From: Tubulanus polymorphus
Taxonomy: Eukaryota; Animalia; Nemertea
NCBI RefSeq assembly: GCF_964204645.1
Contig: NC_134033.1
Span: 1,260,131 to 1,324,130, forward strand
Direction of reading: 5' to 3'
Length of the DNA: 64,000 bases
Of the stretch, positions 6,531 through 59,140 are shown in pieces (positions within the stretch are counted from its first letter, which is position 1; every line of letters starts with the position of its first letter). The notes under the pieces are model-generated. The model was given only the letters and a program-made list of their open reading frames with translations. It made no database searches and was not told where the DNA came from. The position numbers and the translations under genes are program-made.

Positions 6531-8729
6531 CGGCGGCGATGACCAGCCGCGCACGAGCCGAGTGCAAAGCGAGCAAGAAACCCGCTCCATTAGAATCCGT
6601 CACCACCGCGCTTAAAACAACATCATAAAACACGAAATTAAACGATAAAAAAACAATTCAGAAACGATATAACTGATACGGATAAGATGAACGCGATTGT
6701 TAGGTGAGTTTGTCGAGGTTTTCGCATCGCAAATTTCTAGATATTTACGTGAAAAAGTGATTTGATTTTCACACGTGTAAAACCCGGCAATGTAAACGGT
6801 ATATGAACTTCTACTCGTTACTTATAGACTATTCAGATACAAGGGTAGATGCAGGATTAATTTTTAGGGGGGGCAACATACGTGGGGTACCTTTTCGATT
6901 ACTAGGGGCACCCCCCGTAAAGCGAGTGCAGTGAGGCGCGAAGTTGTGAGGAGTTTTTGCCCGGGAAATGAATTTATCGGTACTTCGACTAAGTGGTTGT
7001 TTGAATTTCTTCGTTATTTTATTTTTCAGGCTTCACGGAATTCGGAATGGAATCGATTCAATCGGAGTTCAAACTAATTCAGGATTATTGTGACATTATA
7101 ACAAACTGCGCTCATAAAAAACTGTGAACTGTTATCGAAAACACGAGGATAAAAACTGACTATAATTCTGAGGATCCCTGGATTCATACATTACACACAC
7201 AGGATTGGATAAACTGTGAGTTAGAAAAACATTAACAGCTGAAATTATGTTTTATAGGTTTAGTTAGTTTAGGAACTTATTCGGTGAGTTAGTAAGTTAT
7301 AGAAATGCATGAATATTAGTACAATCTTAAATAATATGTGTAAGTTTAAGTTAAGAAATTTGGGTGCTATTTGCGTCATGGTCCTGTGGGTCTCTGGGTC
7401 TGACGGAGAAGCTGTCTGTTTATTTTGATGCCTAATATCTTTATTTCAGGATCCTGTATTTCATGCTTCTATTTCCAGGGTTTTTCTATATTTTCAGGTG
7501 TTTTCCTTTCATTTCAGAATTTCCGTTTTTTGAATCTTTTATTTTATAAGACAACGACTTTTATGTAAAAACGTTTAGTTGAAATAAACATGACAATTTC
7601 AGGGTCATCGCTGAGACAAGACCCCAGAAGACTTGGCCACAGAGTACGTGTCTTCACCCCCAGCACACAACAGAGTGGCCCGATTCAGGTGCGAACTGTA
7701 TATTCTATTTCAGTGTGAAGAACAAGACCCCCTAGTCACAGAAGATTGAACCTGAAGTTGATGATGATGACAGAGTGACTGAAGAATTCAGGTGTGACCT
7801 GTATAACATGTCTCTATTTCAGTATCCCCCTCCCTAACCCCTAAACCCGAGCCAGAATAGGTGGGCCGAATATATAGGTTAGGTTAGAATAGTTAGTTGA
7901 TAGATCTTTGAATTAAAACATAATTTCAGCTGTTGATATGAAATACAGTTGTAATTTCAAGTGGAACTTTTTAACAGTAAAAGTTGCATTTATTTACAAT
8001 TGAACTGGTTTGAAAATGTTTGACAGTTTGTGAGTTAAGTGTGATTTGATTAAGATGAAGAGTTGAACTGTTGAACTCTACTTCTTATAAAATACAAATG
8101 ACATTTACTTACGTACAACTGGTTTCAGGTTCAGACAGCACCCACGCCACCCCACCCGGTCGGGTCCTATTCCTGTGGTACCTGGGTTTCTGGTTTATTT
8201 GGTTGAATTAATTTATTGATATTTGTGCTGATTTTGGGCGCGCGCTGTTTGTTTTGATGTCGATATTTTTCGCGTTTATTTTTTGCGGTTTTAACGATGA
8301 AATTTGGTTTAATTGTAAATTCGCATCATTAGACGATTAGAACCCTGTACGGTACAGGTCAACTCGCGCCATATCATTTTTGAAGTTATTTCGCGCGATT
8401 TTCTCACTGACGACATCGCGAGGTTCACATGAAATATACCGCTGTGAAAGGGATGCTGGAAAATAGAGGTAGAATATTCTATCCGAGTTTCAAAACTGTG
8501 TTTTATATTGTAATAACTGTTTGTCATATATTGTGTATTTATAGTTTTGTAATATGCGGAATTCTGAGCGGACACGCGTCACGTCGACCCGGGGCCCAAA
8601 CACCTGACTGGACACACGTCACGCCGACCCGAGGCCCAAACACCTGACTGGACAAACAGATAGAACAGTGTAAGTGATAGGTGACCTGTTTATTCTGCGG
8701 TCACAATGAAAATTCTCGCGCCATTTTCA

Positions 8730-9132
8730 TTACAGGTTCAACTCCTGCTGCCATTTTCAGTACAGGTTCAACTCCTGTCATTTTCAGTACAGGTTCAACT
8801 CCTGTCATTTTCAGTACAGGTTCAACTCCTGCCATTTTCAGTACAGGTTCAACTCCTGTCATTTTCAGTACAGGTTCAACTCCTGCCATTTTCAGTACAG
8901 GTTCAACTCCTGCCATTTTCAGTACAGGTTCAACTCCTGTCATTTTCAGTACAGGTTCAACTCCTGCCATTTTCAGTACAGGTTCAACTCCTGTCATTTT
9001 CAGTTCAGGTTCAACTCCTGTCATTTTCAGTACAGGTTCAACTCCTATCATTTTCAGTACAGGTTCAACTCCTATCATTTTCAGTACAGGTTCAACTCCT
9101 ATCATTTTCAGTACAGGTTCAACTCCTGTCAT
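8730..9132 (+). repeat. 27-bp minisatellite (aggttcaactcctgYcattttcagtac), about 15 copies
   Basis: Direct reading; produces the TGSTPVIFS repeat ORFs. Confidence 0.95.
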
Positions 9133-9365
9133 TTCATTTTTGAAATGAATGATCTTTTAAAGTCGTTTTATCCGATCATTTTGACTTGACGAAGATTCGA
9201 ATCATAAGAAATAGATAAATCTCGCGCCCTTTTACTGGACAGGTCAACTAGCGCGCCATTTCGCGCCGTTTCCTTTTGAAGTCATTTCGCGACATTTTAT
9301 TTTGTAGCAAGAGAGTCTTTGGGTGTAGGGTGGGTTTTACTGATTTTGTCTTTATAGGGAAATGA

Positions 9366-10407
9366 CTAGTATCACTGGTATTGTGGAGACTGGTGTCACT
9401 GGTATTGTGGAGACTGGTATCACTGGTATTGTGGAGACTGGTATCACTGGTATTGTGGAGACTGGTATCACTGGTATTGTGGAGACTGGTATCACTGGTA
9501 TTGTGGAGACTGGTATCACTGGTATTGTGGAGACTGGTATCACTGGTATTGTGGAGACTGGTGTCACTGGTATTGTGGAGACTGGTGTCACTGGTATTGT
9601 GGAGACTGGTATCACTGGTATTGTGGAGACTGGTATCACTGGTATTGTGGAGACTGGTATCACTGGTATTGTGGAGACTGGTATCACTGGTATTGTGGAG
9701 ACTGGTATCACTGGTATTGTGGAGACTGGTGTCACTGGTATTGTGGAGACTGGTATCACTGGTATTGTGGAGACTGGTATCACTGGTATTGTGGAGACTG
9801 GTATCACTGGTATTGTGGAGACTGGTATCACTGGTATTGTGGAGACTGGTATCACTGGTATTGTGGAGACTGGTATCACTGGTATTGTGGAGACTGGTAT
9901 CACTGGTATTGTGGAGACTGGTATCACTGGTATTGTGGAGACTGGTGTCACTGGTATTGTGGAGACTGGTGTCACTGGTATTGTGGAGACTGGTATCACT
10001 GGTATTGTGGAGACTGGTATCACTGGTATTGTGGAGACTGGTATCACTGGTATTGTGGAGACTGGTATCACTGGTATTGTGGAGACTGGTATCACTGGTA
10101 TTGTGGAGACTGGTATCACTGGTATTGTGGAGACTGGTATCACTGGTATTGTGGAGACTGGTATCACTGGTATTGTGGAGACTGGTATCACTGGTATTGT
10201 GGAGACTGGTATCACTGGTATTGTGGAGACTGGTATCACTGGTATTGTGGAGACTGGTATCACTGGTATTGTGGAGACTGGTATCACTGGTATTGTGGAG
10301 ACTGGTATCACTGGTATTGTGGAGACTGGTATCACTGGTATTGTGGAGACTGGTATCACTGGTATTGTGGAGACTGGTGTCACTGGAATTGTGGAGACTG
10401 GTGTCAC
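9366..10407 (+). repeat. 24-bp minisatellite (gtatcactggtattgtggagactg), about 43 copies
   Basis: Direct reading; open in several frames, explains the ORFs at 9248-10639. Confidence 0.95.
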
Positions 10408-11945: not shown

Positions 11946-12406
11946 AAAGGTCGTGATCCCAAAATGATCAACGTTTCCTACGACTATTGAGAGCCCACTA
12001 TATGCAGATTTAAAAGTTTCAAAACCAAGAATCAATTTAAGTGACGCAGCGTCTCGAATTTTCACTAGAAATAATCGTCTGACCTACCTGACGATAAAGC
12101 GTCTTAATTCTTGTTGTTTGAATAAATACTTGATTTTAAAACTTTTAAGAATTGTTTGTATATTTATGTTAAGAATTATTGTAAAGTAAATAAATCGATT
12201 TTATCTCTTAATAAAACGTAATTTTATTGTTTACAAAGTAAAGGAAAAAAATATGTATATAAAACATGTTTATATATTTATTACATTTTTGAAGTGAAGA
12301 AAGACTCAGCTCAAGTCGTATCTTTAGGGACCATGAACCTTGATATCCCAGTTGGATGAAACGACGAGAATCCCACATATATAATGTGAGACTCAATATA
12401 TCTTAA

Positions 12407-12764
12407 AGCCTAGCGCGCATCGGCACTGCGATTGGAGACAACTAGTTGCAAGGCAGTTTTCGGCGCATGAGAGGAACTGGCTGGATACGATCAGTTGCTT
12501 GAATGTGTCGATGTGAGCGAGCTTACGATTGGTAAGCGTCGATCTATCTCCAGTTCCGGCCAGTTGCCCATGTTCTACTTTTGAGCAACTGGTTGTACTC
12601 AATCGCAGTCATATCCGTCGATGTGCGCGCTCTGGATCTCGACGATCGACACGCGCCATGCAGTTGCTGCAACTGACCGGTTGTAACTAGATTTCGATGT
12701 GCGCGGGGTAATCGTTCGGTAGCAACTAGTTGTCTCCAATCGCAGTGTCGATGTGCGCTAGGCT
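12407..12764. mobile_element. MITE with about 45-bp TIRs and TTAA target-site duplication (Kolobok-like; Harbinger not excluded)
   Basis: agcctagcgcgcatcggcactgcgattggagacaactagttgc ... gcaactagttgtctccaatcgcagtgtcgatgtgcgctaggct; TTAA on both sides; removing it restores an inverted copy of the 69-bp unit. Confidence 0.9.
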
Positions 12765-12784
12765 TTAATAGTCATCTTTGGGAA

Positions 12785-13440
12785 TGACTATTAGGATATA
12801 GTCGAAACGTTGAATAAACTTAATAACACTAGCTCAAGGAATACAGTATTCCTGAAGATGACTATTAGGATATATTCTAAACGTTGAATAAACTACACTA
12901 GCTCAAGGAATACAGTATTCCTGAAGATGACTATTAGGATACAGTCGAAACGTTGAATAAACTACACTAGCTCAAGGAATACAGTATTCCTGAAGATGAC
13001 TATTAGGATAAAGTCGAAACGTTGAATAAACTACACTAGCTCAAGGAATACAGTATTCCTGAAGATGACTATTAGAATATAGTCGACACGTTGAATAAAC
13101 TACACTAGCTCAAGGAATACAGTATTCCTGAAGATGTCTATTAGGATAAAGTCGAAACGTTGAATAAACTACACTAGCTCAAGGAATACAGTATTCCTGA
13201 AGATGACTATTAGGATAAAGTCGAAACGTTGAATAAACTACACTAGCTCAAGGAATACAGTATTCCTGAAGATGACTATTAGGATATATTCGAAACGTTG
13301 AATAAACTACACTAGCTCATGGAATACAGTATTCCTGAAGATGACTATTATGTATAGTTGAAACGTTGAATTAACTACACTAGCTCAAGGAATACAGTAT
13401 TCCTGAAGATGACTATTAGAATATAGTCGAAACGTTGAAT
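12785..13440 (+). ncRNA. 69-bp tandem array of minimal hammerhead ribozymes, array 1 (about 9.5 units)
   Basis: Unit ctgaagatgactattaggatatagtcgaaacgttgaataaactacactagctcaaggaatacagtattc: CUGAAGA core, stem II GACUAU/AUAGUC, GAAAC, GUU cleavage triplet, stem I UAUUC/GAAUA. Confidence 0.85.
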
Positions 13441-13704
13441 GAATAACTGGATTTAGAAAATATTTCCGGACTTTGTCTCTCATTATCATTATGTGGGATT
13501 CTCGTAAATTTATCGTCACAACTTGAATATAGTGTTTTTATCAATATGGTGATCCCAGTTGGATATTTTATAATTCACTTCAAGTGTCATCATTACGATA
13601 TTGGATCCAACTTGAGCCGAGTCTAACGATAATCCATCAGCCGTTGATACTATCGACTATAAGCGAGATTCGTCTACTCCGATCTGATTCTCATGCGTTT
13701 ACTA

Positions 13705-17613: not shown

Positions 17614-18360
17614 TGCAGTCATTTCCGCTTCTAAGGATCGAAAATTAGAAATGACTGCTTCAGAGCTTTTATTCAAGCTCCCCGGCGCGCCAGCCCGCAG
17701 TATCGCATTAGTTCATAGCAATTCCACTAGGTGGCCGCGCAGTGCTGCCGCAAGGTTCTTACCGATAAGTCGACTGAAATAGGAAGTTCACTTCCTGTAC
17801 GCTAAGTCACGATGATTTTTTTTCCTCGGATTTTAGCAAGAGCAAATTCAATTTTTTGCAAACATGGAAAATTCTGATTTTTTTTTCTTAGTATCTCCCC
17901 GGGTGAAATGTTTGAAATGTCAACAGACCCCGAATCGGCGACAGCAGTTTAAGAGACGCGGAAAACCGAAAACCGAAAACTGCCGCCGGTGTAAATGCAG
18001 AATTTAAACTTTTTATCGAAATCCTCGCGTTTCGTAGCTAAAGATCAAACATTTTCGAGTTCAGAGTCGCGCGTCAGGAATGAATTCAAAACGTTCCATC
18101 GAGAAGTCAAGTGGTTTTAAAACTGACTACTCGGGGAATGTGTGGTAATCCAGTTTCTCAGCCTCTCGACCTATCACCGCCGTCATCGCATTGTCTGAAT
18201 TCCTCTTAATGCGCAAAGACAGCGATTAAAAGAACATTTGGAATCGGAAGATATTTGAGGGTTTACATGAAATCCTACTCTAAAATGAAAAATACAGTTC
18301 ATAACGTTCCCGTGAGCTATCACTAGTTTCACTTCACTAGTTTCTCCTCATAATTTTGTT

Positions 18361-19877
18361 ATTCCTAATGTCTATTAGGATATAGTAGAAACGTTGAATA
18401 AACTACACTAGCTCAAGGAATACGGTATTCCCGAAGATGACTATTAGGATAAAGTCGAAACGTTGCCAATAAACTACACTAGCTCAAGGAATACGGTATT
18501 CCCGAAGATGACTATTAGGATAAAGTCGAAACGTTGCCAATAAACTACACTAGCTCAAGGAATACAGTATTCCTGAAGATGACTATTAGGATATAGTCGA
18601 AACGTTGAATTAACTACACTAGCTCAAGGAATACAGTATTCCTGAAGATGACTATTAGGATATAGTCGAAACGTTGAATAAACTACACTAGCTCAAGGAA
18701 TACAGTATTCCTGAAGATGACTATTAGGATATAGTTGAAATGTTGAATAAACTACACTCGCTCAAGGAATACAGTATTCCTGAAGATGACTATTAGGATA
18801 TAGTCGAAACGTTGAATAAACTACACTAGCTCAAGGAATACAGTATTCCTGAAGATGACTATTAGGATATAGTCGAAACGTTGAATAAACTACACTAGCT
18901 CAAGGAATACAGTATTCCTGAAGATGACTATTAGGATATAGTCGAAACGTTGAATAAACTACACTAGCTCAAGGAATACAGTATTCCTAAAGATGATTAT
19001 TAGGATATAGTCGAAACGTTGAATAAACTACACTAGCTCAAGGAATACATTATTCCTGAAGATGATTATTAGGATATAGTCGAAACGTTGAATAAACTAC
19101 ACTAGCTCAAGGAATACAGTATTCCTGAAGATGATTATTAGGATAAAGTCGAAACGTTGAATAAACTACACTAGCTCAAGGAATACAGTATTCCTGAAGA
19201 TGACTATTAGGATACAGTAGAAACGTTGAATAAACTACACTAGCTCAAGGAATACAGTATTCCTGAAGATGACTATTAGGATATAGTCGAAACGTTGAAT
19301 AAACTACACTAGCTCAAGGAATACAGTATTCCTGAAGATGACTATTAGGATATAGTCGAAACGTTGAATAAACTACACTAGCTCAAGGAATACAGTATTC
19401 CTGAAGATGACTATTAGGATATAGTCGAAACGTTGAATAAACTACACTAGCTCAAGGAATACAGTATTCCTAAAGATGATTATTAGGATATAGTCGAAAC
19501 GTTGAATAAACTACACTAGCTCAAGGAATACATTATTCCTGAAGATGATTATTAGGATATAGTCGAAACGTTGAATAAACTACACTAGCTCAAGGAATAC
19601 AGTATTCCTGAAGATGATTATTAGGATAAAGTCGAAACGTTGAATAAACTACACTAGCTCAAGGAATACAGTATTCCTGAAGATGACTATTAGGATATAG
19701 TCGAAACGTTGAATAAACTACACTAGCTCAAGGAATACAGTATTCCTAAAGATGACTATTAGGATATAGTCGAAACGTTGAATAAACTACACTAGCTCAA
19801 GGAATACAGTATTCCTAAAGATGATTATTAGGATATAGTCGAAACGTTGAATAAACTACACTAGCTCAAGGAATACA
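18361..19877 (+). ncRNA. 69-bp tandem array of minimal hammerhead ribozymes, array 2 (about 22 units)
   Basis: Same unit as array 1; many units (e.g. cores at 18642, 18780, 18849, 18918, 19263, 19332, 19401, 19677) have intact CUGAAGA/GAAA and both stems. Confidence 0.85.
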
Positions 19878-20464
19878 TTTATGATTCTATATTATTCGTT
19901 CGCAATGTTGGATTGCCTTTATCATTATCGTCACAACAATGGTTAATCAATAGGTACATTGTCGGACATCATGTCACCAAATTTCAAGAGGTTTCGCCCA
20001 CTGGTTCAGTCCTGTTTGTCCGATAAATATGGCCGCCAGTCAGCCATCTTGAAAGGTTCTTTGCGAGAGATTTGCTTTCTAGGTTGCTGAGAATGAACGC
20101 GACGGAAATCAAAACTTGTTGCCTGTTTTCCATACCCTGGTAAGCGAGTGTGGATTGTATCAGGTGATATAGTGCGCACGGTGTAGACCAGCGGCGGCGT
20201 ATCGGTAACGAAGTTATTCACGCATGCGCGCAAATTAACCGGACAAAGAGACGAAAATCGAATCGACGGCAATAAAATGAATCAATCGCTTGTGATCTTT
20301 TCATGTCTGACACGTGACTGGAGACTGACTGTGGCAGTGGCTTACAGCTGGTATTGAACCAGTGTCTGTACCGCTAGTTTCCTCGGGTTGCATTTTATGG
20401 CATTGAAACTATAATACGGCGGATCTGGGGTCTGGTTAAGGGAGGGATGCAACCCCAAAATAGG

Positions 20465-20670: not shown

Positions 20671-21682
20671 AGGAGTTCATTGACTCGTTTAAATCCACCG
20701 GCCTCGTTTTCGATCTCTGAGCAGCAGGCGTCTTTTCTCCTCGCGACCGGAACTATTTTCACCGAGTAATAATCGCTGCGCGACCGGTTCACATCCTGGT
20801 CCATGTCGCGTATCGATAATTGACAGGAAAAAACCGTGACTCCGAGTTGCTATCCACGATATCTGGCTATTTCCGGTCTGATTACCGGATAATGCGCCCC
20901 CTAGCGATGATAGAACGAACTCGCGCCATGGAACTCTCCCATCTTAACAAATACTCCTATTAAATCTAATAAGATTGGTTGAATAATAGCGGCTTATGCT
21001 TCTTTAGTATTTTGAACCACTGAAGATGACCATTAGGATTTGGCCCAAACATTGAATATAAACTACTAGCTCAAGGAAAAAGTCGAAACGTTGATTAAAC
21101 TATACTATTTTGAGGACAGATTTTAGAGTAATCTTCCTTTTTGTCAGGCGTCAGGGGATTGGGTATAAAACCTGGCATAAACGAAGAAGACCTGCCCAAC
21201 TCGTTGCCGCCATCTTGTGACGTCACTTCTGCTTTGTCTGAAGCATGCATATATATACACAGACTATATATAAAGATTCGATCAATCGGAATCCCATTAT
21301 GATGTCATCAGAGGAAACCCCAGTTAGTGAGAAGTCTAGTTGAAATCTGCAGTAAGTTAAGCTACATAAATCCAGTGAAAATAAGCCTAAATGATTCAAC
21401 TGAAGAAACCTGGAAACTGATGAATCTACAAAATTCTATAAGATTCAATCAATTGCCGCCATTGCCTTCGCCGCGCGCTGGCAAGTGAGGATTGATGATA
21501 TGGGATATTGGGTAAACACTCAAACAGCTCAATGGAAACTCTCACGATCAATGGACGACTATTATTTACGATCGTAAGACGAATCTCTGCAAGTTTCCGT
21601 CGACAAAAGGCCGCATTAATTTCGGACCCGCTGTCCGGATATCGATGGTAATTGCTCGCGATATGAATACGGGTTAATTGAT

Positions 21683-21990: not shown

Positions 21991-24900
21991 AAAGAACGAC
22001 AGAGGGTAATGATAATATTCGACGCCAGACCGGTTGAGCTGACAGACGAAATATCCCCTCAATGGCGTCAGATCGCCCGAAAAAGGCAAACGGTTAATAT
22101 TGTTTTTTGTTTATTCTCGTATAATAGATTGATTTTCATATCGATAGAACTCGTCTGCTGCACGCGTCGCGCCCGGAGATGAAGCGAAAAATACGGTTAA
22201 TTGCGTTTCGGCTTGTCGCTCGTCGATCGTCGATTCGTTCGTCGGTTCGGTAAACGATTTAAGACGTAAGACGTTAGACATTCGATAAACTTTAAGTAAA
22301 TATTCGTCGTCGGGAGATGAAATTAGACAATGTGTAGAGTTTTTGTGCCAGGTAGAGATTAACGGCAGTTGAGATTGAGAGAGAGAGAGATTGAGAGTTT
22401 GTTTTGATTTGATAAATTGACAGATTGAGACTCGACTTAGATGGAGTCGCACGTTGTGAACGCTGGATTCATGGATCACTGTTGCCAGAAAAAATATATC
22501 CCCCAATCAAAAGTTTAGGCATACGGCCATTATATATCGGCACTGTTGCATCTTCATCAGTCGAAAAGTAGTAGTCTTAATTCGTACAACTGATCTTAAA
22601 GTGGTAAAATTGACAGAACTGAAATTAGTATAGACCGGTCTTGTCGTGTTGCTGATTCGTTTCAGATCAGCTTTAGGTCGGTCTTCTGCTGTTAGATTAG
22701 TTTATATACTATATAGAACTAGAATGAGCTTAGACTGATCTTAAGTTGTTCGATTGGCTTTAGAACCAAAATGAGCTTAGACTGGTCTTAAGTTGTAAGA
22801 TTGTTTATAAAACCAAAAAGGCTCGAGCTTTAACAACTGGTCTTCTGGTCTTCGATTTCCGATTTCAAAATCAAACCCCCTGTTTCGCTCCCGGCAGGTG
22901 TGTTGGGTCTGTAAGGGACACTCAATCGAAAAATCAAACAAAATTTACCAGCAGAAATAAATGAATAATGGGGACAAGATCAAAACAACTGGTCTTTAGT
23001 CGTAAGGTCGGTTTGAGAAGCAAAAACGATTTTTTAGACTCGTCTGTAATAACATTGGCTTTTTTCATAGACTTTTTCTTAGTTGTCATTTATGAGCGAT
23101 TTTTCACGCAGCATTTTAAGATTTTCATCGCGTTTAATGCAGAGAAACCCGCGCGTACACAGCTGTGACGTCATCGCGTATTCATTTGCATATTACCGAG
23201 ATCCAGTAGGTGGAGCTAAAAACAGCGACATTTTGCGCACATTTCGAACGCTTTCGAGTGGGTTATAAAGGAAATGTTGACGACATTCTTATGTCGCTCG
23301 TCGCACAGAAGGCAGATATGTCTATCGCCGCCTATTCAGATATAAAGAGATATAAATAGTTTTTAGCGGGATCGATTACATAAAACAGCCCGAAGCCGAA
23401 AGACAAAACCCGATCTGATATAATATGATTATCATTGTTACACGTGGAACTCTAAAAAAATATCCAGCTTTGAACATGGGCGTGTCTGGGTTTGACAGGC
23501 GTGTCCGTCTGGTGACGTGCGTGCGTGGAGAGCTTAAAGTAGTATTCACCTCCCGATGTAGGCCTACAGCGCTGTAGAGGTCATCCGTGCAAAGATTATC
23601 AAATTCCACGAATTTATTGTCAATCTAAACTCTGTAGCGTCTTGCAATCCACATTTTGCTGAGTCATATCGATAAATCTTTTAATATTATGTCTGTACAT
23701 ATATAGGTTATTTTGTTTTGTTTTTTGTGTGTGTGTGGGTGCTAGGGTTAGATATATTCATTTTCATCGGATATAAATCGTACAAAATTGATCGTTACTG
23801 ACATTGACATCTAGCAATTTGAATAATACATCAGCTGAGGGATACAGTGCAAGCCTAAATAAAGGCTGTTGAGGTTAAAGCGGTCTTTCTGGCTTTGCGC
23901 GGCCTGTGTGGATTGTATCTGTATACTTTTCTATAGAAATTAACTTTGAATTTAAATCTATGACGTAATTTTGGCCGTCAAACGCAAAGCGCCTTACTGA
24001 AGTTAAGTCACCGATGTAACGTACGGTGAAAGCGTGTCGTCTGTGTTGTATCGATGTCCAGTTGACGGCCATTTCACGGCCGTTATGACGCGAAGACGGC
24101 GCCAGCGGCCATTGCTGAAGCAGAAAGTCATGGTTCACGGCAGTCTGATCAGTTCTGACCGATCAATGTGACGCCAAATATTCAATAAGCTTCAGAACAC
24201 GGCGACCCTTTAAATCACCATGCCAAAACTCACATATAGCTCGTCACTTTTTAAATGAATTCATACACGTGTGTTGTTTTTAATGTCAAAGTTCTCCCTG
24301 CGCTGCCTGTAAGGCGGGCCTGTAGCGCTGTTCAGGTATAATCAATAATTCATCGAGTTCGTTCGAGTTCATTGTACAGAACTCCCCCGCGGTCTGATGA
24401 CACGCAATCATACCTAATATGATAATATAACGATTGTTTTGTGTTAAAGTTTTCGTGTATATGCTCGACTTTGTAATTTTCGCGCGTGCTAAATTACAGG
24501 CCTGAACGCGCGTCACTCGAACTTCGCCGTAGGGTTCGAGTCCTGGATTATAACTGCAGTGCGAGTCAACGCGTCGAGCCGGAAATATCGCATATCGATA
24601 TGCAAAGTTAGCTTAGAAACGTCGAAACTAGTTTAGATAAGTCGGAATGAGCTCAGTGGAGTCAAGATTGGGCGTGTAGTGGTTAAATGATCTTAGGAGC
24701 GGTGAAAATAAGTAGCTTACTAATTACAAGAGGAATTAGGCTTGGCGAAATCGGAGGGACATTTTGAAGCGGTTGAGCTTCAAGTAGTATCATAGAGTTA
24801 CAGATATTAAGGGCGATTCCAGGATCAACAATAGAGGGCAGCACAACTTAAACTAAGGGCACAATCAATGAACTAATGCTTTTTGTGCAATTTCCAAACG

Positions 24901-29468: not shown

Positions 29469-29593
29469 ATGATAAGATAAAAACAATCTAAAACTGAAGA
29501 ACACGACGTTTCGATCTCAAACTAGAGATCATCGTCTCACTCCTGACGATGATCTCTAGTGTGAGATCGAAACGTCATGTTTTATCTTATCAT
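29469..29593. mobile_element. Inverted pair of Penelope-type hammerhead motifs (pLTR-like fragment)
   Basis: Plus strand CTGACGA-T-GATCTC tagtgt GAGATC-GAAAC-GTC (29543-29576); near-identical inverted copy 29505-29537; outer IR atgataagataaaa. Confidence 0.7.
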
Positions 29594-48071: not shown

Positions 48072-48375
48072 AGCTTAGACTGGTCTTAAGTTGTTAGATT
48101 GGTTATAGAACTAAAATGAGCTTAGACTGGTCTTAAGTTGTTAGATTGGTTATAGAACTAAAATGAGCTTAGACTGGTCTTAAGTTGTTAGATTGATTAT
48201 AGAACCAAAATGAGCTCAGACTGGTCTTAAATTGTTAGATTGGTTAAAGAACCAAAATGAGCTTAGACTGGTCTTAAGTTGTATGATTGATTATAGAGCC
48301 AAAATGAGCTTAGACTGGTCTTAAGTTGTTAGATTGGTTATAGAACTAGAATGAGCTTAGACTGGTCTTAAGCTG
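48072..48375. repeat. 47-bp minisatellite derived from MITE interior
   Basis: gagcttagactggtcttaagttgttagattggttatagaactaaaat; reverse-orientation array at about 54915-55350 and degenerate one at 22610-22830; matches interior of the 11808-11945 MITE. Confidence 0.9.
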
Positions 48376-49454
48376 TTGCAAGTCAAGTCATCATTTTAAA
48401 TTCTAAAGAACCATCATTTAGAACCATTGCAATAATAGAATATCAATTATAAATTTGCCTGAACTCAACATCACGAACAAACAAATCACTGGTCAAAAAC
48501 AACGATAGAAAATTGCATGCATTTTGACGCCGAGACTTTCTTAATAAACGATGACAATTTGTTCGCTCAAGATCAAGAGTTTTGCAATTAAATTCTCCGA
48601 CTTTACGAGACTCGTGGGACCGAACGACTGTGCGTCTTGTGAAACAGTCGCGCGTATCAGCGGTAATACATCGGACATTAACGCTATACCTTAGGGAAAC
48701 CAACGTAGCGGTTAAACCACAACCGCCATGGCCGCCGTATCACAGTCGACTGCCCTAGAGTAACGGAACCGATTATCACGTGCCCCGCCTCTTGAAAAAT
48801 GTTTACAAATTTCTCATTTCCAAATCAGATGATAACGTGACCGATCTTTGCCTTTCCGATGCTCTGAAATTCACTTCTCGCCTCGCCGAGAATAGCTACC
48901 AGTCCCGCGAGATATCGCGGTGTCGAGTGTCCTTTCATTAGTGACGTGTCATTGAAATATATCCAAATGCCGGACGACGAAGGCCAGCGGGCGTTTACAA
49001 AAAAATACGAACTCGTTTGTAAATGTTAATGTCAGGTGCGATACTGCAGCTGATGAGTCATTGATATTGAAATGGATAGCGCTTATGCCCGTATTGCAAG
49101 CGAGCTAATCAAATGCTTTTGAAGGTGTGATGAAAGGACAGTCTGGATATTACGTGCGTTAGTTATTATAGATCCAGTCGCTTTAAGAAAGAATATATCG
49201 TCTAGACTCGAGGCTCCTGGCTGCAGGATGTTGTATTGTACCGGTTGAAGTTGGCGACGTTCTGTAATTGCCGGTACGGGAACAAACTGTGTTTGAAGTC
49301 GCTTTGCTTGTGTTCGAATACGTCCATATTTTTATCCAATTTGGGTTAATCTTCACTCGAAATTACATTTTTACAAAAGGGACTTAAAATATTCATCTAT
49401 TATCTATATATATATATTTACATCAATATTGAAACAAATTCATTTATTTTTCCA

Positions 49455-53722: not shown

Positions 53723-56700
53723 AGTAGTTTGTTCGTCTTCTGTGCTCCAATACATAGCTTCATTTTAATGGGGATCCAGGCTTTTTCGCCTGTGGCAAGC
53801 AAGAATTCCGCTAAGTCCAAATAGTCCTCACGACTCTGTTTTTGGAAATACATGTGGATATCAATGAACTATTTTTGCCATATCGTCACTACTACCCAGG
53901 AACTATTTTCGCAGTCAGTGTTGTCTGTTGTATTCATACGTACTTACATCAAGCAGACGTAGATTAAGGTCCCGGATGTGCGTTACCGCTGCGAATCAAA
54001 AAGTTTCCTTTTCTTGTCTTGTAAATGGTTCGATGATAGAATATTGGATTGCGTGACGTGGAGAGACGAGAGACGAGAGGCAGAGAAGTGAGAGAGAGAA
54101 GAAAGGAAGAATGGAGAGAGGGAAGAGGGAGAGAATGGGAGAGAGAAGAAAGGAGAGAGAGGGGAGAGGGAGAGAAGGGAGAGAGAAGAAAGAAGAGAGA
54201 GGGGAGAGGGAGAGAAGTGGAGAGAGAAGAAAGGAGAGAGAGGGGAGGGGGAGAAGGGAGAGAGAGAGAAGAAAGAAGAGAGAGGGGAGAGGGAGAGAAG
54301 GGGAGAGAGAAGAAAGGAGAGAGAGGGGAGGGAGAGAAGGGGAGAGAGAAGAAAGGAGAGAGGGAAGAGGGAGAGAAAAGGAAGGGATAGAGGAGAGTGA
54401 AGGGAGGTGAGCTGAGAGTGAGAACAAATAAGAGGGTTGGAGAGAAGAGAGGTAAGGCTAGGGCGTAACTTATCTTTGAAACTGTAACTTCAGATATACG
54501 TTTTCCAAACACTATTGATCGGCAGTCATTAAGTGCTCGATCAATCTTTACAGACAGGTAGAAAAAAACTAGCGACATTTTTCGATTCGACAATTGATTT
54601 CAGAACGAATTCGTTTTGACCCCCGCAGTGAATAAGCGTCGTGTGACTCTTTGTAGATGGTTGAATTAAGCATTTATAATTAAACAGTTTAACTCGCTTT
54701 AATTAGATCAAAGCGGTTTTTTCAATTTAGCCAAAGGAAATCGTGTTGTACGCGTGACATTTTGATTAATTGAATCGTCTGAAGCTTCTTGAAGCTGTTT
54801 TCGAGAAACCACCGAGGACCAGGTGCACAAGGCAAGACCAGTCTTAGCGAAACAACAAAACGAAATAAAAACCGGTCTAAGCTCACTTTAGTTCGAACAA
54901 CTTAAGACAAACTCACTATGGTTCTATAGCCAATCTAACAACTTAAGACCAGTCTATTCTCATTTTGGTTCTATAACCAATCTAACAACTTAAGACCAGT
55001 CTAAGCTCATTTTGGTTCTATAACCAATCTAACAACTTAAGACCAGTCTAAGCTCATTTTGGTTCTATAACCAATCTAACAACTTAAGACCAGTCTAAAC
55101 TCATTTTGGTTCTATAACCAATCTAACAACTTAAGACCAGTCTAAACTCATTTTAGTTCTATAACCAATCTAACAACTTGAGACCAGTCTAAGCTCATTT
55201 TGATTCTATAACCAATCTCACAACTTAAGACCAGTCTAAGCTCAGCTTAGTTCTATAGCTCATCAAGCAACCTAAATACCAGTCTAAGCTCATTTTCTAT
55301 TACCAATCTGAAAACCTAATCTAACAACTTGAGACCAGTCTAAGCTCATTTCAATTTAATACGACCCTCCGATTTAAGACCAAATTAGACCTGATCGACT
55401 GTTAATTCGACCAGATTCAGAGATAAATGAATTTCAATCAATCCATTTGAAATATTCAAACTACCGTCTGCTGTTGGGTTCACAGTAATATGAAACCTAC
55501 ATCAGTTACCAGTCATCAATTAAATATCATTCAGGCACAGTGAAATATCGAAATGTATATTCGATATTTGATATTTGATATCGTCGTTTAAATTCCTAAT
55601 AGCAGCAATTATAGAAACTGTTTGAAACCGAGGAAGCGGCAAATATCGATTATCATTTTGGCAAGATGTCTGCCTCCATAAATCCGCGCATGACATCACC
55701 CAAAATGACCTACTACATCCCATATCTATACCATATACCCCCTATGACATCATCAAGCAGATACTATAGTCTCTTCATTACAAGATGGCTGCCTTAATAA
55801 AACCCCCCTATGACATCATCAGTACAGAGTACCCCGTCTTGTATATTTCTCTTTGGAAATTCCCCGTTAGGAGAAATCATTCCAGCAAACATGGCTGACT
55901 CCATCAATCCCCTTATGACATCATCGTAGATTTGATTTGAAAAATCCTTTCCAGATAAATGACCGCCTTCGTAAATCCCCCTCCCCGGGTGAAATCTGTG
56001 AAATGGTCAAATTGCGCAGGGAATCCCTTCCAGACGAGATGGCTGCCTTCATCAATCACCCTATGACATCATCATATTGCGCAGGGAATCCCTTCCAGAC
56101 GAGATGGCTGCCTTCATAAATCACCTTATGACATCACCAAGATGGACAATACATCCTGACCATTGATAACATACTGCATGTAATTAGTGCCTATTTAGCG
56201 CAGTGTTTAGCGATGTCGGAGTCCAATCCCTTCTACAATATTATTTCGTATACTTCTCGGTGATTTCGAATATAAAAAAAGAACATATCTTTCTCGAAAT
56301 TTCTGAAAAATAATTTCGCAATCAATGCCGTTATTTGTTTTTGTTAAGTAACACAATACACGCTCGGTAAAAGCTGTCGTGTTTTTGAAACTGAATACAA
56401 GTCTCCTGAATTCGCTGCACGCAACATGAGGAATCTTACTGATTTTGCAGTTCATGGTGTTTCTGCATCATATTTATCATGTGGGCGAGATGATGGAAGC
56501 AGTAGTGATATCGGCAAAGGAAGGGGAAAGGGGGAGGGAGGGAGGGAGAAAGAAGAGTGATAAGAGTGAGGGAGAAAGAGGGAGAGGAAGGGGAGAGAGG
56601 AGAGAGATGGAGTGTGAGGGAGGGAGGGATAGAGTGAGATGGGAGAGGGATAGAGGAAAAGAAAAAATTTTCCGTGGTTTGGGGAAGGTTGGAGCTACTA

Positions 56701-58259: not shown

Positions 58260-59140
58260 TGTGGACGATCAGTTTGTGAAAGTGTGCTGATAAAATGTCT
58301 AATATCTGGTGTTTGTAGTTCATTTTCAATTAAAAATGTCTCAGGTGAAGCACTGAACACATGTGAAGTGTGGATGATCAGTTTGTGAAAGTGTGCTGAT
58401 AAAATGTCTAATATCTGGTGTTTGTAGTTCATTTTCAATTAAAAATGTCTCAGGTGAAGCACTGAACACATGTGAAGTGTGGACGATCAGTTTGTGAAAG
58501 TGTGCTGATAAAATGTCTAATATCTGGTGTTTGTAGTTCATTTTCAATTGAAAATGTCTCAGGTGAAGCACTGAACACATGTGAAGTGTGGACGATCAGT
58601 TTATGAAAGTGTGCTGATAAAATGTCTAATATCTGGTGTTTGTAGTTCATTTTCAATTAGAAATGTCTCAGGTGAAGCATTGAACACATGTGAAGTGTGG
58701 ACGATCAGTTTATGAAAGTGTGCCGATAAAATGTCTAATGTCTGGTGTTTGTAGTTCATTTTCAATTAGAAATGTCTCAGGTGAAGCATTGAACACATGT
58801 GAAGTGTGGACGATCAGTTTATGAAAGTGTGCCGATAAAATGTCTAATGTCTGGTGTTTGTAGTTCATTTTCAATTAGAAATGTCTCAGGTGAAGCACTG
58901 AACACATGTGAAGTGTGGACGATCAGTTTGTGAAAGTGTGCCGATAAAATGTCTAATGTCTGGTGTTTGTAGTTCATTTTCAATTAGAAATGTCTTAGGT
59001 GAAGCACTGAACACATGTGAAGTGTGGACGATCAGTTTTTGAAAGTGTGCTGATAAAATGTCTAATGTCTGGTGTTTGTAGTTCATTTTCAATTTAAAAT
59101 GTCTCATGTGAAGTGCTGAACACGTGTGAAGTGTGGACGA
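58260..59140. repeat. 109-bp satellite, about 8 copies
   Basis: Unit starts 58341, 58450, 58559...; same family as 1596-2099. Confidence 0.95.

Follow-up and report, generated by a model that had tools for sequence, protein, structure and literature searches.

Newt satellite 2 and the Sm-alpha repeat of Schistosoma consist of units of about 330 bp, whose hammerheads have a helix III loop and canonical loops 1 and 2. Minimal hammerhead ribozymes are reportedly cleaved as dimers, a result ascribed to Lunse et al. 2017 (cited in PMC7761336). In Penelope-like elements (PLEs) such minimal hammerheads lie in the pLTRs, mostly as single motifs or spaced by the length of one element (Cervera and de la Pena 2014, PMC4209133); in vitro they cleave poorly, and only as dimers (PMC4209133). 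PLE insertions include partial tandems and may have an inverted copy next to their 5' end and a tail extension at one of the ends; non-autonomous PLE derivatives have been described whose 3' ends are common to autonomous families (Craig et al. 2021, PMC8557442). The classical non-LTR retrozymes, 150-450 nt in length, contain canonical hammerheads with loop-loop contacts, and both linear and circular RNAs have been demonstrated for them (Cervera and de la Pena 2020, PMC7229834). A recent preprint argues that non-LTR retrozymes are themselves non-autonomous PLE derivatives (Li, Clavereau and Pollet 2026, 10.64898/2026.07.22.740005); it reports consensus lengths of 51-972 bp, with 75% of the families having seven repeat units or fewer.

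We have analysed a stretch of 64,000 nucleotides from the nemertean Tubulanus polymorphus (hereafter the window), which contains arrays of a 69-bp unit built around a minimal hammerhead, together with the related arrays and elements elsewhere in this genome. In our judgement the 69-bp arrays are probably non-autonomous PLE derivatives, which would have been dispersed in trans as cassettes and then expanded locally in a manner independent of the ribozyme. This origin is supported by the class membership of the motif, the presence of a PLE partner, the homology of the flanks, the architecture of the insertions and the amplification of arrays with dead cores.

Tandem Repeats Finder (TRF) gives a period of 69 bp for both arrays of the window, with 9.5 copies and 94% matches at 12784-13440 (array 1) and 21.8 copies and 97% matches at 18368-19877 (array 2), and all of the 69-bp units are on the plus strand. 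TRF and the sequence itself thus bear out the 69-nt period, the numbers of about 22 and about 9.5 copies and the decayed copy at about 21020-21100 that had been proposed in the initial annotation. The unit consists of UAUUC (5' strand of helix I), the core CUGAAGA, an extra U, helix II (6 bp, GACUAU/AUAGUC, with the 6-nt loop uaggau), GAAAC GUU and GAAUA (3' strand of helix I), followed by a 25-nt spacer. Two array elements and one older insertion can be delimited as follows, R1 being the covariance model described below.

12340-12402, minus strand: upstream arm of element 1, an inverted and internally deleted copy of the 3' tail (inverted repeat and sequence reading)
12784-13442, plus strand: array 1, about 10 units (TRF; ten R1 matches, E 5e-12 to 6e-7)
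13443-13565, plus strand: element 1, 3' tail; its homologue in the autonomous PLEs is the pLTR segment that separates the hammerhead from the 3' end of the element
18225-18340 (approximate), minus strand: upstream arm of element 2, a degenerate inverted tail with part of the spacer (comparison with the reverse complement of the common tail)
18357-19878, plus strand: array 2, 22 units, first unit position TATTCC (TRF; 22 R1 matches, best 51.7 bits, E 2.4e-13)
19879-19956, plus strand: 3' tail of element 2, copied from the pLTR 3' segment but diverged (alignments)
21014-21170, plus strand: old decayed insertion of the array family, about 1.5 units and a tail (weak R1 match at 21020-21053, E 0.045)

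The inverted repeat of element 1 has its arms at 12355-12396 and 13473-13514, which are 71% complementary. The upstream arm is broken on the right by an unrelated TTAA-flanked insertion (12403-12768), after which 10 nt are left of the 5' part of the inverted hammerhead (12769-12778). The insertion measures 366 bp, has terminal inverted repeats of 47 nt that are 96% complementary and TTAA on both sides, and looks like a small TTAA-targeting MITE. The arm of element 2 was read against the common tail of three other loci (L012, L015, L019); model R1 found no minus-strand hammerhead there, and this arm is thus partial. Array 2 contains an internal duplication of seven units (483 bp), 18982-19188 being identical to 19465-19671. 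Units share the stem II variant GAUUAU, previously described as recurrent, and the core variant CUAAAGA by descent through this duplication, and neither arose by repeated mutation. The window is also unusually rich in distinct minisatellites (95 TRF rows). For instance, a 109-bp satellite (1595-2099 and 58260-59140) has direct copies with inverted ones right beside them and recurs at a distance of 56 kb, and a 47-bp satellite is found at three sites, one of them inverted (22712-22818, 48072-48377, 54912-55351).

The hammerhead motif is present in the window far beyond chance. A strict descriptor, which demands an intact core and paired stems, accepts 19 of the approximately 31 units of the window; it has no match on the minus strand of the window and none in 200 simulated 64-kb windows. 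The remaining units have core changes, among them CUAAAGA, CCGAAGA, GACAC and UAAAC. The consensus unit has the core CUGANGA ... GAAA ... UH in type-I order, a U bulge between A9 and 10.1, no helix III loop and the palindrome ACGU (15.2-16.2). Rfam hammerhead families (types I, II, III, HH9 and HH10) had no match at gathering thresholds, nor was there any at E up to 10 in 18300-19950. We attribute this silence to the loop-less helix III; it would be a limit of the models and is not evidence against the motif.

The pairing of the stems was assessed on other families of the same genome, since stem variants inside the 69-bp family are uninformative, nearly all of them being single-step changes. 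A pattern in which N7 is not A, which leaves out the 69-bp family, and in which pairing is not required has 1,671 matches in the genome versus 8 with the reversed control. These matches group into families with a common core, the bulged U and CGAAACGU, whereas their stems are different and fully complementary: helix II is GGCUGUU/AACAGCC, GGCUAAC/GUUAGCC, GAUCUC/GAGAUC or GGCUAA/UUAGCC, and helix I is CCAC/GUGG, CAC/GUG or CGC/GCG. In an alignment of 13 sequences from five families of the genome, 84.6% of the paired cells are complementary versus 27-55% with slid partners, both partners have changed in 10 of the 12 stem pairs, and the covariation score amounts to 0.679 versus at most 0.22 for the slid controls. 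The G10.1-C11.1 pair is invariant in 13/13 sequences, and the core and the bulged U are fixed as well. The covariance model R1 was built from families A-D only, the 69-bp family being left out; it nevertheless finds all 32 array units of the window (22 in array 2 and 10 in array 1) at full length, with 22-51.7 bits and a best E of about 1e-13, and its matches to array units are on the plus strand only. On these sequence grounds, each unit is assigned as a true member of the PLE minimal-hammerhead class. The initial claim of a minimal type-I hammerhead of Penelope-like class is thus upheld by R1, by the covariation between families and by the motif bracketing ORFs with RT and GIY-YIG domains (see below). 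The claim that every unit is a hammerhead is overstated in view of the strict descriptor, even if R1 finds all 32 units. Two further hammerhead pairs lie in the window: a head-to-head pair of a different minimal family at 29505-29582 (helix II GAUCUC/GAGAUC, tails on both sides; R1 49.7 bits on the plus strand and 37.8 bits on the minus strand) and a weak, decayed pair at 12042-12118.

The genome contains autonomous elements with the same ribozyme. At locus L079, two same-strand hammerheads 2.86 kb apart bracket an intact ORF of 796 aa with RVT_1 and GIY-YIG domains, one hammerhead being located about 110 nt upstream of the ATG. Candidate PLE ORFs were found at no fewer than 1,586 places in the genome, many of them intact, and belong to at least three lineages, with 100, 68 and 57% identity to the query. 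The many frames intact at 99% identity suggest that PLE activity in this genome is very recent or ongoing. PLE ORFs also occur as tandem and head-to-head pairs (L079:5313-7703 and 8326-9930; contigs C5 and C12). The protein collection searched had no exact match to the PLE protein. The exact 34-nt hammerhead of the unit has 1,321 matches in the genome versus 0 for the control. On the contigs listed, this 34-mer lies on either side of intact ORFs of 833 aa of the 68% lineage, 139 nt upstream and at a distance of about 330 nt downstream, the RT and GIY-YIG domains having been confirmed on the related ORF of L079; three tandem copies spaced by 2,858-2,863 bp are found among the elements that it brackets. 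The check proposed in the initial annotation, to look for an autonomous Penelope element that bears the motif, was positive.

The flanks of the arrays lead to the same elements. Locus L068 is a 5'-truncated pLTR of the 68% lineage. About 50 nt of the 5' flanks of two arrays (L041 and L043) are nearly identical to the upstream sequence of this pLTR, and the 3' ends of the arrays at L002 (long end) and L040 (short end) are nearly the same as its tail, this tail dimorphism being seen at a few loci only. The tails of the window arrays align to the PLE pLTR segment as well; in the alignments of the element 1 tail, the blocks ATTGTGGGATT and ACnnGnATATnGTGT are common to L079 and L068, with identical spacing. 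The link from the partner to the arrays is drawn from coordinates and from this one 5'-truncated pLTR. A TATA-like motif, TGTATATATA, is found in the pLTR about 30 nt upstream of the first base of the hammerhead (L068:1100-1145, and the 5' flanks of L041 and L043). Its position would put a putative transcription start at the very place where most arrays and solo copies begin.

A genome search with a three-unit query gave at least 195 candidate places, from which 37 arrays of 4-31 units, on at least eight contigs, were examined. Their usual layout is an inverted partial copy upstream, a number of direct units and a common 3' tail. About 28 of the 37 arrays start at unit position TATTCC, and the inverted copy, where present, abuts the array head-to-head at that position. 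No PLE coding sequence was found adjoining the arrays, and no target-site duplication was evident by eye at L015 and L019. The term satellite, used for them at first, has to be revised: these are not free satellites, but short dispersed arrays in Penelope pLTR sequence, with an inverted copy and a common tail. Among the best candidates, scored 69-bp arrays are tentatively located mostly in distal contig parts (C3, C5, C6 and C8-C12) and scored intact PLE ORFs in central ones (C1-C4).

The inverted sequence on both sides of many arrays is reminiscent of a MITE or foldback DNA transposon, with terminal inverted repeats around an internal satellite and an incidental likeness to hammerheads. This was our first reading of the flanks, and it was dropped on account of their pLTR homology and of the PLE ORFs. 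We now find it hardly credible: the inverted arm varies in length among the 37 loci and is often absent, the flanks are homologous to the pLTR of elements encoding RT and GIY-YIG domains, the motif covaries with other PLE hammerheads and matches a model built from these, and inverted upstream copies are known for PLEs (PMC8557442).

The variation among units bears on how the arrays arose and spread. Units differ at 2.46 positions within arrays versus 3.70 between arrays, which indicates local homogenisation, and there are array-private variants carried by most units of an array. Among the 34-mer matches listed on contigs C1 and C2 (n=100), none is in 69-bp register with a neighbour, 60 are alone and 40 have a neighbour on the opposite strand at no more than 1.5 kb. 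The homogenisation, the private variants, the seven-unit duplication inside array 2 and the fact that all 100 of these listed hammerhead copies are single or head-to-head could all be accommodated if each locus were a 5'-truncated, single-hammerhead PLE copy that had expanded by its own slippage, the arrays never having been mobilised. Such an in-situ minisatellite is nonetheless very unlikely in our view, because one novel unit junction, AAGGAA|TACAG, and one 25-nt spacer are common to all arrays examined, on at least eight contigs, and because the variant 20C recurs in first units between loci (10/74 of the first-two units versus 7/388 of the other units). The single junction and the first-unit variant argue that the arrays arose once and were then dispersed as cassettes of several units.

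Data from another species indicate that the hammerhead type is shared across species as single copies. In another organism (run X7, library type unspecified), 97 contigs cover only the hammerhead part (19810-19851), are mostly 90-95% alike and then diverge; the spacer and the tandem form were not seen in the contigs of this run. Single low-depth tandem contigs were noticed in two other organisms (C and D); they may be due to cross-contamination and were left out of account.

The arrays might alternatively be ultra-small retrozymes, in which double hammerheads cut after GUU and release 69- or 138-nt RNAs, and these are circularised and copied by the PLE enzyme in rolling-circle fashion into new arrays. 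The units are indeed bona fide PLE-type hammerheads in tandem, their ACGU palindrome permits a nested double-hammerhead fold, and private variants in most units of an array would fit the birth of that array from a one-unit template. A rolling-circle route has moreover been proposed for non-LTR retrozymes and PLEs (PMC7229834, PMC4209133). The layout of the arrays speaks against it: every array ends in a tail that lies outside the 69-nt circle, and most arrays begin at a fixed position other than the cleavage site.

The mutations give no sign of constraint on the core. Over 424 units from 37 loci, we counted 5.2 independent changes per site at the 11 core positions versus 3.8 in the spacer, the hottest sites being the CpG at C11.1 and C15.2. 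The core has thus mutated as freely as the spacer, an outcome that the initial annotation had itself named as counting against its interpretation. Free mutation of the core is, however, what is expected of neutrally decaying transposon copies, and so provides weak evidence against self-cleavage. The core positions A14 and A6 are essential for hammerhead catalysis. One array (L031:1572-3169; 23.9 copies, 98%, 67-bp period) is fixed for GACAC (A14C), and another (L039:1500-2380; 12.8 copies) is fixed for CUGUAGA (A6U). Arrays with dead cores have hence reached 24 and 13 units, which implies that array growth is independent of catalysis.

Folding of two units points in the same direction. The nested double hammerhead has an energy of -12.3 kcal/mol, or -16.9 kcal/mol for the best enforced fold, versus -29.7 kcal/mol for the minimum free energy (MFE) structure; the active fold is thus about 13-17 kcal/mol worse than a competing hairpin. 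In the MFE fold, the spacer sequence GGAAUAC pairs with the helix I 5' strand and with C3 and U4, and the ensemble probability is about zero for helix I and about 0.70 for this hairpin. As nearest-neighbour energies ignore Mg2+ and tertiary contacts, these values are indicative only. It is the tandem junction that gives rise to this hairpin, which the single-copy pLTR lacks. In the tandem form, the new spacer would be predicted to sequester helix I, and any self-cleavage may be expected to be weak. Efficient self-processing into tiny RNAs is unsupported and would be disfavoured according to these in silico folds. Of the sequencing runs in which this sequence occurs, none is registered as RNA.

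Published experiments weigh mostly on the same side. The in vitro activity of PLE minimal hammerheads is low (PMC4209133); eight of nine Xenopus retrozyme dimers were not cleaved in vitro, although one was cleaved strongly (10.64898/2026.07.22.740005); and hammerhead cleavage is dispensable for PLE insertion in vitro, with no RNA-seq ends at the cleavage site (PMC11167929). We consequently regard the ultra-small retrozyme as unlikely. A related scenario seems quite unlikely, in which read-through, or pLTR-bearing copies such as L041 and L043, would yield transcripts of intact arrays, and double hammerheads would cut these into 69-nt RNAs that circularise, the spacer hairpin guarding the monomer from re-cleavage. 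Were such circularising 69-nt RNAs real, no natural self-cleaving circular RNA or retrozyme would be smaller, and they would hardly exceed the ribozyme that they contain.

Returning to the derivation of the arrays from PLEs, the following scheme can be proposed. A 69-bp slice of the pLTR of one PLE lineage, with the 44-nt minimal hammerhead, about 20 nt downstream and about 5 nt of junction, would have been duplicated head-to-tail once, creating the junction AAGGAA|TACAG. A promoter-less cassette of several units with the pLTR 3' tail would then have spread to dozens of loci, presumably by the action in trans of a PLE reverse transcriptase and GIY-YIG endonuclease. Transcription would start at TATTCC, about 30 nt downstream of the TATA-like pLTR motif, and this is our sole account of the fixed 5' start. 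The resulting insertions would have a head-to-head inverted copy upstream, a defined 5' start and a short or long 3' tail end. At each locus, the copy number would subsequently have been altered by expansion and homogenisation at the DNA level, without ribozyme activity; cleavage by the minimal hammerheads could in principle occur only where two adjacent units form a dimer via the ACGU palindrome.

One genome thus harbors three stages with an identical 34-nt ribozyme: intact autonomous PLEs, 5'-truncated solo copies made of a hammerhead and a tail, and dispersed arrays of the hammerhead segment. It represents a concrete intermediate for the proposed descent of animal retrozymes from PLE pLTRs. 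The arrays fixed for A14C or A6U and the spacer hairpin that competes with helix I constitute natural controls for the action of minimal hammerheads in vivo. These arrays also call for caution, as tandem hammerhead arrays can grow without catalysis.

Compared with known systems, the motif resembles the PLE minimal hammerheads (PMC4209133) in its core, its loop-less helix III, the palindromic 15.2-16.2, the unpaired nucleotide between A9 and G10.1 and the G10.1-C11.1 pair, as well as in the lengths of helix II (6-8 bp) and helix I (4-5 bp). Further similarities are the many consensus families per genome, the covarying stems, the opposite-strand pairs and the pLTR location at elements with RT and GIY-YIG domains. 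In contrast to these PLE hammerheads, the hammerhead segment is here iterated head-to-tail with a 69-bp period, adjacent motifs being 25 nt apart. The insertions share with PLEs their common 3' ends, head-to-tail copies, 5' inverted copy and optional tail (PMC8557442, PMC4209133; Frangieh et al. 2024, PMC11167929). Unlike in the non-autonomous examples of Craig et al., which are Chlamys elements of green algae (PMC8557442), the repeated unit is a 69-bp internal slice of the pLTR and not the whole element. By description, newt satellite 2 and Sm-alpha are similar in their tandem or dispersed type-I hammerheads, weak helix III and dimer action, but the unit described here is only 69 bp long and has no helix III loop. 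With non-LTR retrozymes the arrays have in common dispersed, short tandem arrays of type-I hammerheads, low GC, co-occurrence with PLEs and kinship to PLE pLTRs. They deviate from the classical retrozymes in that the hammerhead is minimal and the monomer is 69 nt, with neither the canonical loop contacts nor the length of 150-450 nt; a PLE 3' tail is also retained, in many cases together with an inverted copy, and processing of their RNA would be disfavoured in silico. The initial view that a 69-nt monomer is shorter than those of known retrozymes is superseded by the range of 51-972 bp now reported (10.64898/2026.07.22.740005), and the 69-bp unit is probably not the smallest reported. Among known elements, the metazoan non-LTR retrozymes come closest to the arrays, which do not amount to a new class.
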